This document shows positions 25,504 through 32,359 of a DNA stretch of 64,000 bases, piece by piece. The notes under the pieces were generated by a model. It did not search any database and was not told where the DNA came from. It saw only the letters and a program-made list of their open reading frames with translations. Source of the DNA: Dimorphilus gyrociliatus (lineage: Eukaryota; Animalia; Annelida); NCBI GenBank assembly GCA_904063045.1, contig CAJFCJ010000016.1:930001-994000 (forward strand), written 5' to 3'. Both the position numbers and the translations under genes were made by a program. Position 1 is the first letter of the stretch. Each line of letters starts with the position of its first letter.

Positions 25504-27604
25504 TCTCTCTCTCTCTTGCTGTGTCTCTCTATCAGTTTTACTCTACCTCGTGTTGTTTATTTTTTTGCGTTTCGGCTCCTAGTCTCTAGGCCTAATAACT
25601 TCTAGCGCTTCTGGAATGTAAGGAATTGTACCTGCAAAGTGCAAACTGTTGGTAATAGGTTTGTTTTTTAGTGGGGAATGTTGTTTGTTAAGCAAAAAGT
25701 CAGTTTTTTCTCAATGCGAAACACCCACCCACCCAATACACATTTAGTGTAGGCGTATAAGCAAGTGAAAAGAAAATATATAGAGGAAAGCTAAAGAATT
25801 TTCTTTTGCAGAATTATTCCGCTCTGCAGCGGAAGCCGGTCAACACGATATACTAAAGTTATACAACACCCGAGGAAGTATAATTAATATATCAGCAAAA
25901 ATCGAAGAAAATACGCCGTCTACACGGTATCGTTTAGAGGTTGTTGCTGCTTATTTTTCAGGTTAGTCTAATTTATACTACATAACCTCCAAGAAGGAGA
26001 GACCTTTACACCTTCTCTCCATTTAATATGCTCTTTTCTTCTACCCTGTTTACTTCGCTCGTCTTTCATACTCAATATCAATTTCTCACTCTGTCTATCT
26101 CTCTCCCTCTCCCTATCTCTCTCTCCACTCGGGATAAATAAATTCCTACAAATTCTTACTATCGAATACTACAAGTTGCTCTGTCTTCCTTAAAAGTGAT
26201 ATAAGCTTAAATTTATATCAAACAGTTTTCCGCCTATTTGTTTTTAAGGGTACGTTGTCTATCCCTAAGGCATTATTATTAATTTTCAAAACATGTAAGG
26301 CAAAGAAAACCGGAGAGGAATAGAAAGCGTAAAAATCATACGGGTTCTCTATCTTTATCCTCTCGCTCGCTCTCTCTCTCTCTCTCTCTCCCTCTCCTAC
26401 TTTCTTTCGCTCCTTTTCGATACGCATATATATATTGTATCCTACTAATGTTCATATAGACTTAATAACCCTCTGAATATTTACCTTTTCATAAACGAAG
26501 TAAATTTATTAACAGCGTAGGCTTATACTTTTTCCCATTTTACTAAAAGGTATTATGGGTAAGGCCGTTCATAACTAAAGGCTTTTTTTGTATTTTGATG
26601 ATTTTCTATAGAAAAGTAATAACAATAAAAGTAAAAAGGAAGAGGAAATGATAAAACTTTTGTCACGCTTTTTTTATACTTGGAATATTCTTTTAAAAAA
26701 AAGAAATGGCAATCTCTCTTCTCTACCTTTTTCCGCCTACTTTCTTTACTATATTCTTTTGTATAGCGTCAAATTCCTTATGCATAGCTAATCCTCCAAC
26801 TAATAAATTACCGGTTAATGAAAGATGATAATAATGGTATTGTCTAATTATCATCGTATAAGTATTACAAGAGCAATAACAAGAGCAAAATGTAAAAAGG
26901 ACGGAATAATACTTTTGTAGCGTTATGCTAAAGAGAAGAAAATCCTCCATCCTTTTTGCGCTAGTTTTTCTTTGTTCCGCTTGTTCCATTTATTATATTA
27001 CGTTAATGTGCATTTCTTTTATTAATAACTGTAGAATAAAATAGATAATATTCTTTTGTATGAAGGTGAATTTTTTACTTTTCTATCCCCATTTAGTCTC
27101 TTTCTCCCCCCTCTCTTCCCTCCCTTTTTCTCTCACACTCGCGCACTTACACTTAGTCATTAACTCTTGGAAGAAGAAAAAAATCTTGATAACTAGTTTC
27201 ATTTTAATACTTGGGGAAAGGAAAGAAAAATGAGGTTTTTAAGTTGAATTTTTTTGTCACGAAAAGTTTCTTTCTATTTCATTTTCCTCTTTTTTTTTTT
27301 TTTACAAACGCGAAACCTGCTTGAAGCAAGATTATTAACCTTCAAAGGAAACTTAACAAATTGATGAAGCTTCTTTCAATAGAAAATTCCTAATTGTTGT
27401 TCGACAAAGTAGTATCTTTGTCAGGAAAAAACTTATATATATGTCTATGTATATATATTATATATACATATATATTTATATAATAACATAGAATATAGAA
27501 AAAAAAAGTTATTTAATCGAAAGAAAAGTGTTAGTCAATTTATATTAAACATTAGGTAAAGCTTGTATTATATTTGTATAAATTGCCGTGTTTATACCTA
27601 TGCT

Positions 27605-27652
<48 letters not shown>

Positions 27653-29486
27653 TAGAGAGAGAGAGAGAGAATTTTGTTCTTTTTTTGACAAGTTCATTGA
27701 ACTTGAAATGATTATCAAAAAAGGAGAATAGAGGAATATATGATTGAATAAGCAGCAAAAAAGAGATTTAAGTACTGTAATTGAGTAAAATGATACATAT
27801 ATATATATAGCGTACACAGTCTAATTAACGACTTTTTTATGTGAATAGGAAGAATATATTGAGAAATTTGAATGGTAGAGGAAATAAAAATGGAATAGTT
27901 ATATACTAATATGTATTCACAGTACATTTGTACAGTATACTGTATGTACTGCATATTATAAAATATTCGTTATCATGTACTAAATAGTGTAAGCCTATTC
28001 ATGAAAATTATTGAAGTGATAAAAAAAGATTTATATACTCTGACCTAAGAGTAATCAAACAGAAAAATCTGTTATAAAGTATTTTTCTATACACTATTCT
28101 CAAACTTGCATATACTATCTATATTATGTCAATAGAATTTCTATACCAGCTTATTTGCAGGGAATATTATATATCTTTTTGAGAATGTCTAGAGAATGTC
28201 TTACAAGAACAATTCGACTGCAAAAACAGGGCGTTACTGCATAATTTGTCACATCCTCCAGATCCAATATTAGGTTACCTAGCAACACCAGGTGTAGCTT
28301 ACACTCCCTACTTGGGTTGTAAAAGCCGTAGAAAAAACTGTTAATTTTTGCATTCGACGAAATATAAGAGTGATAGGTTGATATTAAGTAAGACACTTCG
28401 TTCATCTTTAAATTACCTTAATCTAACGTTACTTTAGGTTTAAGGCGCTTTTTCTCTATTACTTTATAAAGTCACGTACATCTAATGTAGATAAGGCTTT
28501 TTCTGCGCCATGGACTAGACCTTATCATGTTCCTTTACAAGTCCTATTCAATAAACTCGACGCATTTAACCAACCATACAGTATTGGTAGTTTTCACTCG
28601 CCTCCTTTCCTTCCTCTCCCTTTCCGCCCCTCTTCTCAAAGTCCTTTGAACGCAAATTTATTAGCAGTAAAATTAATTGACTCCAATACAACTACGTAGT
28701 TTTATTTCTTTTCCCAGATAGTATCGAAGCAGTGTTTATAGTCTATGTTTATGTTTTGTTACTATTGTTATTGTTAATCGTAGACTAGCCACTCTCTCTT
28801 GGAAAAAATTTCATTTTATTCTCGTCAACCCTCCTTCCTTCCTTCCTCATAATCATTCTAAAAATAATGATAATAATAATAAGAAACTACTAGATAATTA
28901 ATAAAAAGTGAAATATAACGCATGTTAGCTAATTAAATAATCAATAAGCGAATGACTGACTATATATATATATATATACTGTATATGACATGTATATTAA
29001 TAATCATAGTTCATAAATTACTATAAAGTACTTGTCCAAAGAAAATGGAAGGGGGGAGGGGGGAAGGAAGATGGAAAGAGGCAGGTATATATCGTAAAAT
29101 GTATAAATATCTAAATTGTATTGAGTAGTATCTTTTCTTATAAATTATCCCATAATTGGAAATAATCGCACACTCCTTTAACAAATATCTTAATAACAAT
29201 CGATATCTTTATTGAAGAAAGCAGCGGCATACTAAATTACTGCCTTACTTTTTTTTTCTTTAACTTGTACAACATTGAAGAATTATAAGAGTTAGTTTAT
29301 ATAGATATAAATATATAGTGTATATTTCTATCCATAGTTATGCCTAATTTATTAATAGACTCACATAAAAATCAAAAACGAACAATCTATTCTTATTCTC
29401 TTAACTTGTTTAATTATTTAAGAGAAAGTATTACAATGAAAGCCTACCTATCTTTCTTTCTTTCTTTTTGTCTCTCTTTCTGTCTC

Positions 29487-29548
<62 letters not shown>

Positions 29549-32359
29549 CGTCACTCTACCTCTCACTCTCTTTGTTTATTTATGCGAATAAAACTGTCAA
29601 TAGTTACTTTGTTATTATAGAATAAATACCTTATTTATTTAACTATTTTTTTTTTGGCCTGTTTTTTCAAACAGGGACTGCTATTGCTGAAGAATTAGGC
29701 ACCGATCTTGTACTACTTCAAAACAGGATTGAAGAGATAGAAAGATCTTTATTGCAGGGCGGTTCTACGCCTGATATCGTTTACGATATGCAGCAAAAGG
29801 TAGAGGAATTTAAGCAAAAACTAGAAGGCGTCGAACATCTTAGTTGGCTCGGTTTATTTAAGGATATGTCTTCTACGAAATTAAGGCACTTTTGGAAAAA
29901 GAATCAGTCCATAAAGCGAACTGACGATCAGAATGAAGCTGTGTATAAGAAATTTCTAGAACTTTGGTAGGGTCTTGTTAACAGTGGGGAGTTAATTATT
30001 TTATTTAAATGTCAAATATTTTATAGTAAAGTTCAAGCAACAGAACAAGTAAGGGAGTATTTGAAAAAACCTACATTCGATAATTGGCAATGGGAAGATG
30101 CGGAAATCATGTTCCTTTTAAGACAAATGTATATTGATCTCGGCTTTTTGCATACTTTCAATATAGAGGTATGTAAAAAGAATAACTTAAATTCCTTGAA
30201 TAATTCGGCATGTTATCGTTCTGTAGATGTCTACCCTGCAACACTGGTTATACGAAATCTATAAAAATTATAATCTCGTTCCTTTTCATAACTTCAAACA
30301 TTGTTTTATGGTTGCTCAAATGGTAAATTAATCGCTTTTGCGACAATTCTCAACTAGTTTATACTAATCTTCAATTACAATTTCTTATTTTTCAGATGTA
30401 CGGCTTAACTTGGCTTATAGGACTCAGGAATTATGTAGAAGATATAGACATTCTAATACTTATAACATCCGCCATTTGCCATGACCTTAATCATCCAGGA
30501 TATAATAACGCATATCAGGTATAACCTTGCCTTTTAGAGACCTAAAGGAATAGTTAACTTGATTTTAATTCCTCTCTGGCAGATAAATGCCCGAACAGAG
30601 TTGGCTCTACGCTACAATGATATCTCACCGTTGGAAAATCATCATTGTGCCGTGGCCTTTGAAATTTTAGCAAATCCTAATTTCAATATATTCAGGAATT
30701 TAGATAAGGATGTTTTTAAGAAGATTCGGGAAGGAATGATTAAGTAAATATCTCTCTTCTTCAATATTTTAATTAAAATAAGCGAGAGAGAGAGAGAGAG
30801 AGGGAGAAAGAAATAAAGAAAGAAAGAGTCTTAAATAAAACAAAACATAAAATTCCTTTTTAATCCTTCAGATGTATTCTGGCAACTGATATGGCAAAGC
30901 ATTCTGAAATATTGAGCAGCTTTAAGGCTGCTATAGAGAAGGGATTTGATTTTTCTAGCAAGGAACAGAAATCTTTGGTAAATATACTTTTTAATTAAAA
31001 TAATTAAACAGGAAACTTAAAGCTTAACTTCAGCTTATGATGATCTTAATGAAAGTCTCTGATATATCAAACGAAGCGAGACCATTAGGAGTCGCTGAAC
31101 CTTGGATTGATTGTCTTCTTCAAGAATTTTTCCATCAGGTTCTAGCTACTCGCCGTTGTTTTCGGTCTCATTATCCTTAAATATAGTGTCTTTTTTCTCA
31201 ATTTAAAATACGATATCCTCATTATATTTCATAATTTGAAATAATCAACTCGAAGAGATTCATTAAATATAATAATAGAAATAATAACACAACAAAAACA
31301 ATATGGCCGCCGTTTATACAAGTAAATAAGATACTAATTTATTCTATATTCGTTGTCTCTTCCAGTTGATTCTCTTTCAAAGTTGATGAAGCGACAATAA
31401 TAAAGTCACAAGTAAACGCAGTTAAAGAATATAAGACTGAGGGTTTTTTAATGCATTTCTTTTTATTATAATCGTTGTTTAAACGTCAAAATAGTTAGAT
31501 TTCTGCATGTTTATCGCAGTTGCTTATAATACTCATCAAAGTGGCCGATATATCAAACGAAGCCCGTCCTATGCAAGTTTCCGAACTTTGGGCCGAGTGT
31601 CTTCTTGAAGAGTTCTTTATGCAGGTTCAGCTCTTTAATACCTTTTACATTATTATTTGTTTTTATGTATTTAAATGTATTAAAGAAGACGTTGTAAAGA
31701 TGTCTTTGTATATTTTGTATTCGAAAATATTCTCTTGCAAAAGCTCCAATTTAAATTCTCCTCTTCTCTTTCTTTTTACAGCATTCCTCTCCAATTGATT
31801 ATTTTAATATTTTCTTTTATTAAACGATACAGAGCGACATGGAAAAACTTGAAGGTCTACCCGTTGCGCCATTTATGGATAGAGAAAAAGTAAATAAATG
31901 TACCTCCCAAGTGGGATTTATTAAATTTGTCCTTTTACCTTTATTTGAGACGTTGGCATCTCTTTTCCCAAAAATTCAGGTAATTATATATTAATTTCAA
32001 CAGGAAATTGATTTTAAATGAAATTTTCTTATCAAAATATATTAGTATATACAGTATATAGTATATCTATCTATCTATCTATCTATATATATATATATAT
32101 ATATATGTATTCATATGTATTATTCTACCACATGTCCCTTTCAACGTTTGCCTTTCTGCCTACCTCTCCTCCTTATTCAACAATGTTCTAGCGCGATATT
32201 ATCGAACCCGTTAGGGAAGCTTTGCAGTATTACCAAAAAGAGTCTGATTCCTTAGAAGAGGAAAACGAAAAGAGGAAAGATAGTAAAAATCTGGAGAAGA
32301 TAGACGTTCATTTAAAAAGACAAAATAAGAATGGACTTAAGACGAACAGTAACTCCTGA
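24785..32359 (+). CDS. PDE9: cGMP-specific 3',5'-cyclic nucleotide phosphodiesterase, PDE9 family; 11 exons plus one alternative
   Basis: Exons 24785-24872 ([19 protein letters not shown]), 25812-25961 ([18 protein letters not shown]), 29675-29966, 30027-30168, 30227-30322 ([14 protein letters not shown]), 30396-30518 ([10 protein letters not shown]), 30583-30743 ([21 protein letters not shown]), 30872-30977 (ILATDMAKH), 31034-31138 or 31520-31624, 31833-31979 ([23 protein letters not shown]), 32192-32359. Phases all compatible; motifs match the human PDE9A catalytic domain closely. Confidence 0.95.
27608..27669. repeat. Compound (AT)n(AG)n microsatellite
   Basis: Direct reading, PDE9 intron 2. 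Confidence 0.95.
29481..29543. repeat. (CT)n microsatellite
   Basis: Direct reading, upstream of PDE9 exon 3. Confidence 0.9.
31034..31138 (+). CDS. PDE9: PDE9 exon 9a (alternative)
   Basis: 105 nt, phase 0-0, [35 protein letters not shown]; CAG acceptor, donor GTTCTA. Confidence 0.85.
31520..31624 (+). CDS. PDE9: PDE9 exon 9b (alternative)
   Basis: 105 nt, phase 0-0, [35 protein letters not shown]; CAG acceptor, donor GTTCAG. Confidence 0.85.

Follow-up and report, generated by a model that had tools for sequence, protein, structure and literature searches.

A conserved pair of candidate alternative exons at the active site of a predicted PDE9 phosphodiesterase from Dimorphilus gyrociliatus

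The PDE9-type gene and its tandem exons

The window analysed in this study is a 64,000-nucleotide stretch of contig CAJFCJ010000016.1 from the annelid Dimorphilus gyrociliatus, and its + strand contains a short-intron gene of PDE9 type. Exon borders were fixed by the joints of assembled RNA contigs from four public runs (X1, X2, X3, and X12), which are coral-tank and marine metatranscriptomes. When the exons were searched singly, six of them were found to span positions 15-232 of the 238 positions of the PDEase_I profile (PF00233) in order. The best full-length matches of the gene are proteins named PDE9A-like, with that of Owenia fusiformis at the top, and the two tandem exons described below match PDE9A chains, the next PDE families being at least seven orders of magnitude worse in E value. 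As judged from its sequence, the gene encodes a predicted cGMP phosphodiesterase of the PDE9 type.

All the exons lie on the + strand. The 3' end of an upstream coding exon is placed at 25929-25961 (donor GTTAGT), where X1 and X12 contigs with loose ends at 29672 match 25929-25958 exactly. It is followed by a 3.7 kb intron (25962-29674), which is very long for this genome and is rich in low-complexity CT/GA and TA repeats. The next coding exon, N-terminal to the catalytic domain, occupies 29675-29966 (joint 29965->30026, cut +1, in all four runs), and coding exons follow at 30027-30168 (joints in X1, X2, X3, and X12) and 30227-30322 (RNA joints). The HD motif region is encoded at 30396-30518 (profile positions 15-53, Pfam E 2e-10) and the next segment at 30583-30743 (profile positions 54-107, Pfam E 4e-16), both bordered by joints. 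The constitutive exon 8 (30872-30977, profile positions 109-142, donor GTAAAT) is joined to two alternative partners, as seen in the joints 30976->31033 and 30976->31519. These partners are exon A (31034-31138, donor GTTCTA) and exon B (31520-31624, donor GTTCAG), which are separated by a 381-nt intron (31139-31519); the introns before A and after B are 56 nt and 208 nt, respectively. Exon 10 (31833-31979, RNA joints) covers profile positions 185-232, and the last coding exon (32192-32359), reached by the joint 31977->32190 (cut +2), has an open frame at 32192-32356 and contains the stop codon, with the 3' UTR extending past 32400.

Two further observations concern exon 10. A 40-nt part of it (31852-31891) is cross-matched by X2, X3, and X12 contigs that come from another PDE9 gene of this animal, which read, for example, KPTAQIGFI and are nearer to vertebrate sequence. 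In addition, an X2 contig covering 31970-32190 carries 7 letters (GTTATTC) in place of the last 9 nt of exon 10 before the last exon, which could reflect strain variation or, alternatively, a second donor at the end of exon 10.

Sequence contrast and age of the two exons

Exons A and B are 105 nt each, lie in phase 0-0 with open frames, and are followed by GTTC, as had been described in a preliminary reading of the DNA; both are preceded by AG, and the ends of the flanking exons are now fixed by RNA joints. The two are identical at 70 of 105 nucleotides (67%) and at 23 of 35 amino acids, so that the homology noted earlier stands, with a somewhat higher count than the approximately 20 identical residues first given. 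Codon positions 1/2/3 account for 11/4/20 of the differences, and the dN/dS comparison proposed in the preliminary description gave approximately 0.11 by the Nei-Gojobori method (dN 0.28, dS 2.5), with dS saturated. Both exons match residues 393-427 of human PDE9A (E 2e-11 for A and 2e-10 for B), in agreement with the segment originally proposed, and both fall on positions 150-183 of the PDEase_I profile. Because these positions are identical, the catalytic domain has one slot for the two exons, and the gene is therefore predicted to be able to make two enzymes differing at 12 of 35 residues.

Human PDE9A (PDB 2HD1, 3DYN, and 4QGE, among others) is identical to A and to B at 24 of the 35 residues each. 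Like the window exons, it has Asp402, Ile403, Asn405, Glu406, Leu420, and Leu421, whereas its Tyr424 is Phe in both A and B. The DISNE motif is intact in A and B. The earlier assignments that D402, N405, E406, and L420 are kept in both exons, and that exon A has L/P/I and exon B M/L/A at the equivalents of 410/415/417, were borne out.

Across phyla, the two exon types are distinguished by a recurrent set of residues: position 394 is M in A and L in B, 398 is M in A and I, L, or V in B, 401 is S in A and A in B, 411 is D, G, or N in A and E in B, and 418 is D in A and E in B. A weaker contrast (A in exon A versus V or C in exon B) is found at position 407 in molluscs and Tubulanus. The window follows this pattern with M394, M398, S401, and D418 in A and L394, I398, A401, and E418 in B, and it adds contrasts of its own at A413/S413, P415/L415, and I417/A417. 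Of the latter, L415 of B is unique and S413 is lineage-specific, and the A417 contrast is shared only with Tubulanus B.

Asp402 is the residue that we take to be the Zn ligand, as in PDE9A structures. The pocket or ligand contacts named within this exon in work on PDE9 inhibitors are Ile403, Val417, Leu420, Leu421, and Tyr424 (PMC6089849), and Glu406 is the partner which fixes Gln453 (PMC3069055). Among the listed contacts at 403, 406, 417, 420, 421, and 424, only 417 differs between A and B in the window, and the conserved A/B positions 394, 398, 401, 411, and 418 are absent from the contact lists of both papers. Residues 394, 398, and 402 would share one helix face, as judged from their periodicity, which would place the conserved contrast beneath Asp402 rather than at the ligand. 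The main differences between the A and B enzymes are probably to be sought around the metal-site helix (394, 398, and 401) and at residue 418, more than in direct ligand contacts, and in this species the predicted pocket shape differs as well at 413, 415, and 417. The proposal that splicing switches the nucleotide and inhibitor pocket is a fair one for this animal at 413 and 417, but the conserved differences avoid the listed ligand contacts.

The pair is not restricted to Dimorphilus. Relatives were collected by a protein-representative search with exon 7, and then by a word search for which the closest full-length match served as query; their isoforms are annotation models taken as annotated, and their genomic exons are direct evidence. 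In the first of these searches, the best match to exon 7 that could represent a close relative had 83% identity, and such matches were single-exon fragments on metagenome contigs of less than 1 kb; a word search with A and its read-through frame returned distant A-type fragments only. An A-then-B pair is present in Owenia, nine mollusc genera, and two nemerteans, and A and B orthologues were found in 13 other genera in three phyla (annelids, molluscs, and nemerteans). In the genomic DNA of Owenia, Magallana, Lineus, and Haliotis, tandem 105-nt exons lie between the equivalents of exons 8 and 10, with A first. The look for both exons in related genomes that had been proposed thus found them in the same order, length, and phase.

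The isoform models of these relatives vary. Equal-length A-only and B-only models exist for Mercenaria, Mya, Magallana, Haliotis, Pomacea, Biomphalaria, Patella, Liolophura, Lineus, and Tubulanus, and the Lineus isoforms contain three versions of the 35-residue exon. Owenia is annotated with A-only and A+B models, Dreissena with B-only and A+B models, and Mytilus with B-only and A+B models and with A followed by intron read-through. In Lineus longissimus (locus L008, 25792-27616), four tandem copies were found, namely A, a third type, a dead copy, and B. The third type is expressed (RefSeq isoform X3), the dead copy contains an in-frame stop and lacks the AG acceptor, and the cluster appears still to be gaining and losing members.

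Mean identity is 86% among 14 A exons and 78% among 14 B exons, as compared to 70% between A and B within one species, and the higher value for A across phyla than for A versus B within species indicates that the duplication is ancient. The window exons fit this pattern: A is 85% identical to the A exons of 13 other lophotrochozoans and 72% to their B exons, and B is 73% identical to other B exons and 65% to other A exons. Compared with Owenia A, window A has the same residue at 31 of 35 positions, with all A-type diagnostic residues present. In an exon tree, which is poorly resolved with its 35 columns, the labels cluster (5 changes versus 16 in shuffles), no A is paired with the B of its own species, and window B stands beside Tubulanus B; separate A and B clades were sought in this tree, for which the columns are too few. 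Annotated models from amphioxus, a hemichordate, echinoderms, and a coral have a single exon type, which is A-like, and a single copy with another exon border is present at an arthropod-like locus (L005). Since the amphioxus, hemichordate, and coral models are A-like only, A appears on this evidence to be the ancestral type and B a derived duplicate, which would have arisen at the latest before the divergence of annelids, molluscs, and nemerteans. As read from these orthologues of each copy, both exons have been kept as coding sequence by selection, and the pair appears to have been kept by annelids, molluscs, and ribbon worms for more than half a billion years.

Run X2 represents a strain approximately 97% identical to the window. 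It carries two changes in A (31063 and 31090) and one in B (31567), all of them synonymous and at third positions, and eight differences in the approximately 205 nt of partly covered introns.

RNA evidence and splice signals

The RNA contigs show that B is the default exon of finished RNA in this animal. The main path, 8->B->10, is also the finished one, with the 8->B joint found in X1 and X12 and the B->10 joint in X1, X2, and X12. The exon 8 donor is joined to the A acceptor in some molecules as well; this joint occurs in X12 only, at a contig depth of 139 versus 485 for 8->B. The X12 contig concerned (contig 7) runs unbroken over 31033-31548 and comprises A, the whole A-B intron, and the start of B, and the intron after B is without coverage in the same run. 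In X1 and X2, A is covered solely together with the unspliced preceding intron, and X2 contig 10 spans 30872-31287. Translation running on from A meets an in-frame stop at 31178-31180, 13 codons past the exon (the stop-free stretch ends at 31177), and a protein made from the RNA carrying A plus intron would be truncated.

No A->10 joint and no A->B joint (31138->31520) was found in the contigs of the four runs. All four were analysed as contigs, which drop rare forms and give no levels, and one of the runs is deep; thus, the RNA result is evidence of presence and does not demonstrate absence. At this level, one of the three junction paths named in the preliminary description (8-9b-10, where 9a and 9b are A and B) was seen, and 8-9a-10 and 8-9a-9b-10 were not. 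The mature pattern in these contigs is therefore a B-only path, with A seen only when its downstream intron is retained. The suggestion of a tandem, probably mutually exclusive active-site exon holds in part: it is strongly backed by comparison with relatives, whose models include A-only and B-only forms, but here 8->B->10 is the only finished form seen and the A donor was never seen spliced.

The donor of A may offer a clue to this behaviour. It starts with GTT in all five genomes compared (GTTCTA, GTTGGC, GTTGGC, GTTCGA, and GTTTGC), as against 1 of 15 other donors (exon 8, B, and exon 10 of the same five genomes), the one exception being window B (Fisher's exact p ~4e-4, calculated by hand). 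Animal donors seldom have U at +3, and the conserved odd donor of A is probably weak. The upstream exon of the window gene also has GTT at its donor, followed by consensus AGT, which makes the GTT in the window less striking than its conservation. The B donor is non-consensus at +3 in both annelids, being GTC in Owenia (L006, 77786) and GTT in the window (31625), and is GTA in molluscs and the nemertean. The genome of D. gyrociliatus has a median intron of 66 bp, and its splicing, with intron retention varying with intron size, is adapted to short introns (PMC7854359); such an adaptation would add to retention of an intron of 381 nt or 694 nt.

No known device enforcing exclusivity was found at the pair when short introns, U2/U12 mismatch, frame shift with nonsense-mediated decay, and RNA stems were considered. 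The 381-nt intron between A and B is too long for steric hindrance, both introns are GT-AG with no ATATCC or GTATCC donor, and the 105-nt length keeps the frame when A and B are both included, which leaves nothing for nonsense-mediated decay to police. In a search for docking-selector pairing among the three introns around A and B, even the best duplexes did not exceed mononucleotide shuffles in stability (z -0.2 to +1.5), and the inverted repeats in these introns are short and AT-rich.

Given these RNAs, A could be a decoy exon in this animal, with 8->A splicing followed by intron retention and a premature stop, so that PDE9 output falls, and with B as the sole productive exon. The X12 contig with its unspliced 381-nt intron, the lack of an A->10 joint in any run, and the early stop would all be expected, the size-dependent retention reported for this genome points the same way, and three Mytilus annotations contain truncated models of A plus read-through. 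These Mytilus RefSeq isoforms (X3, X2, and X3) run from A into the intron (VFHTNLCCVC...), the same form as the X12 contig. However, a decoy would need just splice sites and a stop, whereas the 31 residues shared with Owenia A, together with the full set of A-type diagnostics, need selection at the protein level for nearly all of the lineage's history. In addition, productive A-only models are annotated in ten other genera. We regard a decoy role as unlikely, albeit the best placed of the alternatives.

That A is a recently dead exon, intact-looking by chance, is a much poorer fit. The polypyrimidine tract upstream of A is poor, and the contigs contain no productive A junction, as would be expected of a dying exon. 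On the other hand, A has an open frame and intact AG and GT dinucleotides, RNA contigs show splicing to its acceptor, and both of its differences from the related strain are synonymous, whereas the true dead copy in Lineus has an in-frame stop and has lost its acceptor. We consider this explanation very improbable.

Least probable of all is the joint inclusion of A and B, which would repeat 35 residues within the PDE9 protein, because, although it would preserve the frame and several double-inclusion models that speak against exclusivity are annotated (in Owenia, Dreissena, Mya, Mercenaria, Crassostrea, Mytilus coruscus, Haliotis, and Biomphalaria), the joint it needs occurs in no run, the fold has one slot for both exons, and such models are a common gene-predictor artefact at tandem homologous exons.

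Two probable catalytic variants from one gene

The explanation that we favor, and which we consider likely, is an ancient swap between A and B which yields two catalytic variants from one PDE9 gene, with A as a regulated minority exon. The exchanged segment would be a helix-loop-helix that carries Asp402, Asn405, and Glu406 along with pocket residues 417, 420, 421, and 424. In this explanation, B would have been duplicated from A before annelids, molluscs, and nemerteans split, and both copies would have stayed coding since. With its probably weak GTT donor, the intron after A would be removed slowly or only under some conditions, and A-containing RNA would accumulate in this unspliced state up to the joining of A to exon 10. 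A weak donor fits a minority exon, the X12 RNA, and the Mytilus read-through models alike.

A more specific version of this mechanism is offered tentatively, and we hold it to be possible rather than probable: the conserved poor GTT donor may act as a gate, detaining the intron after 8->A so that A->10 is finished only in certain cells or states.

Pairs comparable to that of the window stand in RefSeq as PDE9A-like isoforms, with A and B versions, respectively, in Magallana gigas (XP_011418592.1 and XP_011418591.1), Mya arenaria (XP_052821146.1 and XP_052821145.1), and Lineus longissimus (XP_064642292.1 and XP_064642290.1). They resemble the window in the same 35-residue exon (human 393-427), the A-then-B order, the GTT donor of A, and the contrast of M398/S401/D418 in A with I or L398/A401/E418 in B. 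In contrast, the window has far shorter introns, a B exon with the rare or unique residues L415, A417, and S413 and with a GTT donor, and an A exon known in RNA only with a retained intron. A literature search for exons used in a mutually exclusive way in PDE9, or in the catalytic domains of phosphodiesterases, returned no relevant paper. Thus, the earlier remark that such an arrangement had not been described for PDE9 agrees with the absence of a paper in that search, but the isoform pair itself already stands in mollusc and nemertean RefSeq models. What the window contains is, by comparison of these sequences, a real and conserved alternative exon pair that is already in the annotation of other species.

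Mutually exclusive exon pairs as such are well known. The classical ones of Dscam, 14-3-3 zeta, and voltage-gated Na and Ca channels are like the window in being tandem exons of equal length and phase, long conserved, which swap a functional segment of the protein; unlike them, the window pair has no known enforcing device that we could find. In vertebrates, PDE9A is not known to have more than one such exon, and the variation described among its isoforms is N-terminal.

The isoforms known for PDE9, which is a drug target, vary outside the catalytic core. In the A/B swap that we favor, one gene would offer two catalytic cores, a choice that three phyla have kept since before their split. The helix around Asp402 and residue 418 would be marked as places where nature tunes PDE9, and the conserved odd donor of A would give a handle on how a two-exon cluster is regulated without the textbook devices for exclusivity. 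If the gate is true, the choice of PDE9 catalytic variant would be made post-transcriptionally, and by the same gate from annelids to mussels.
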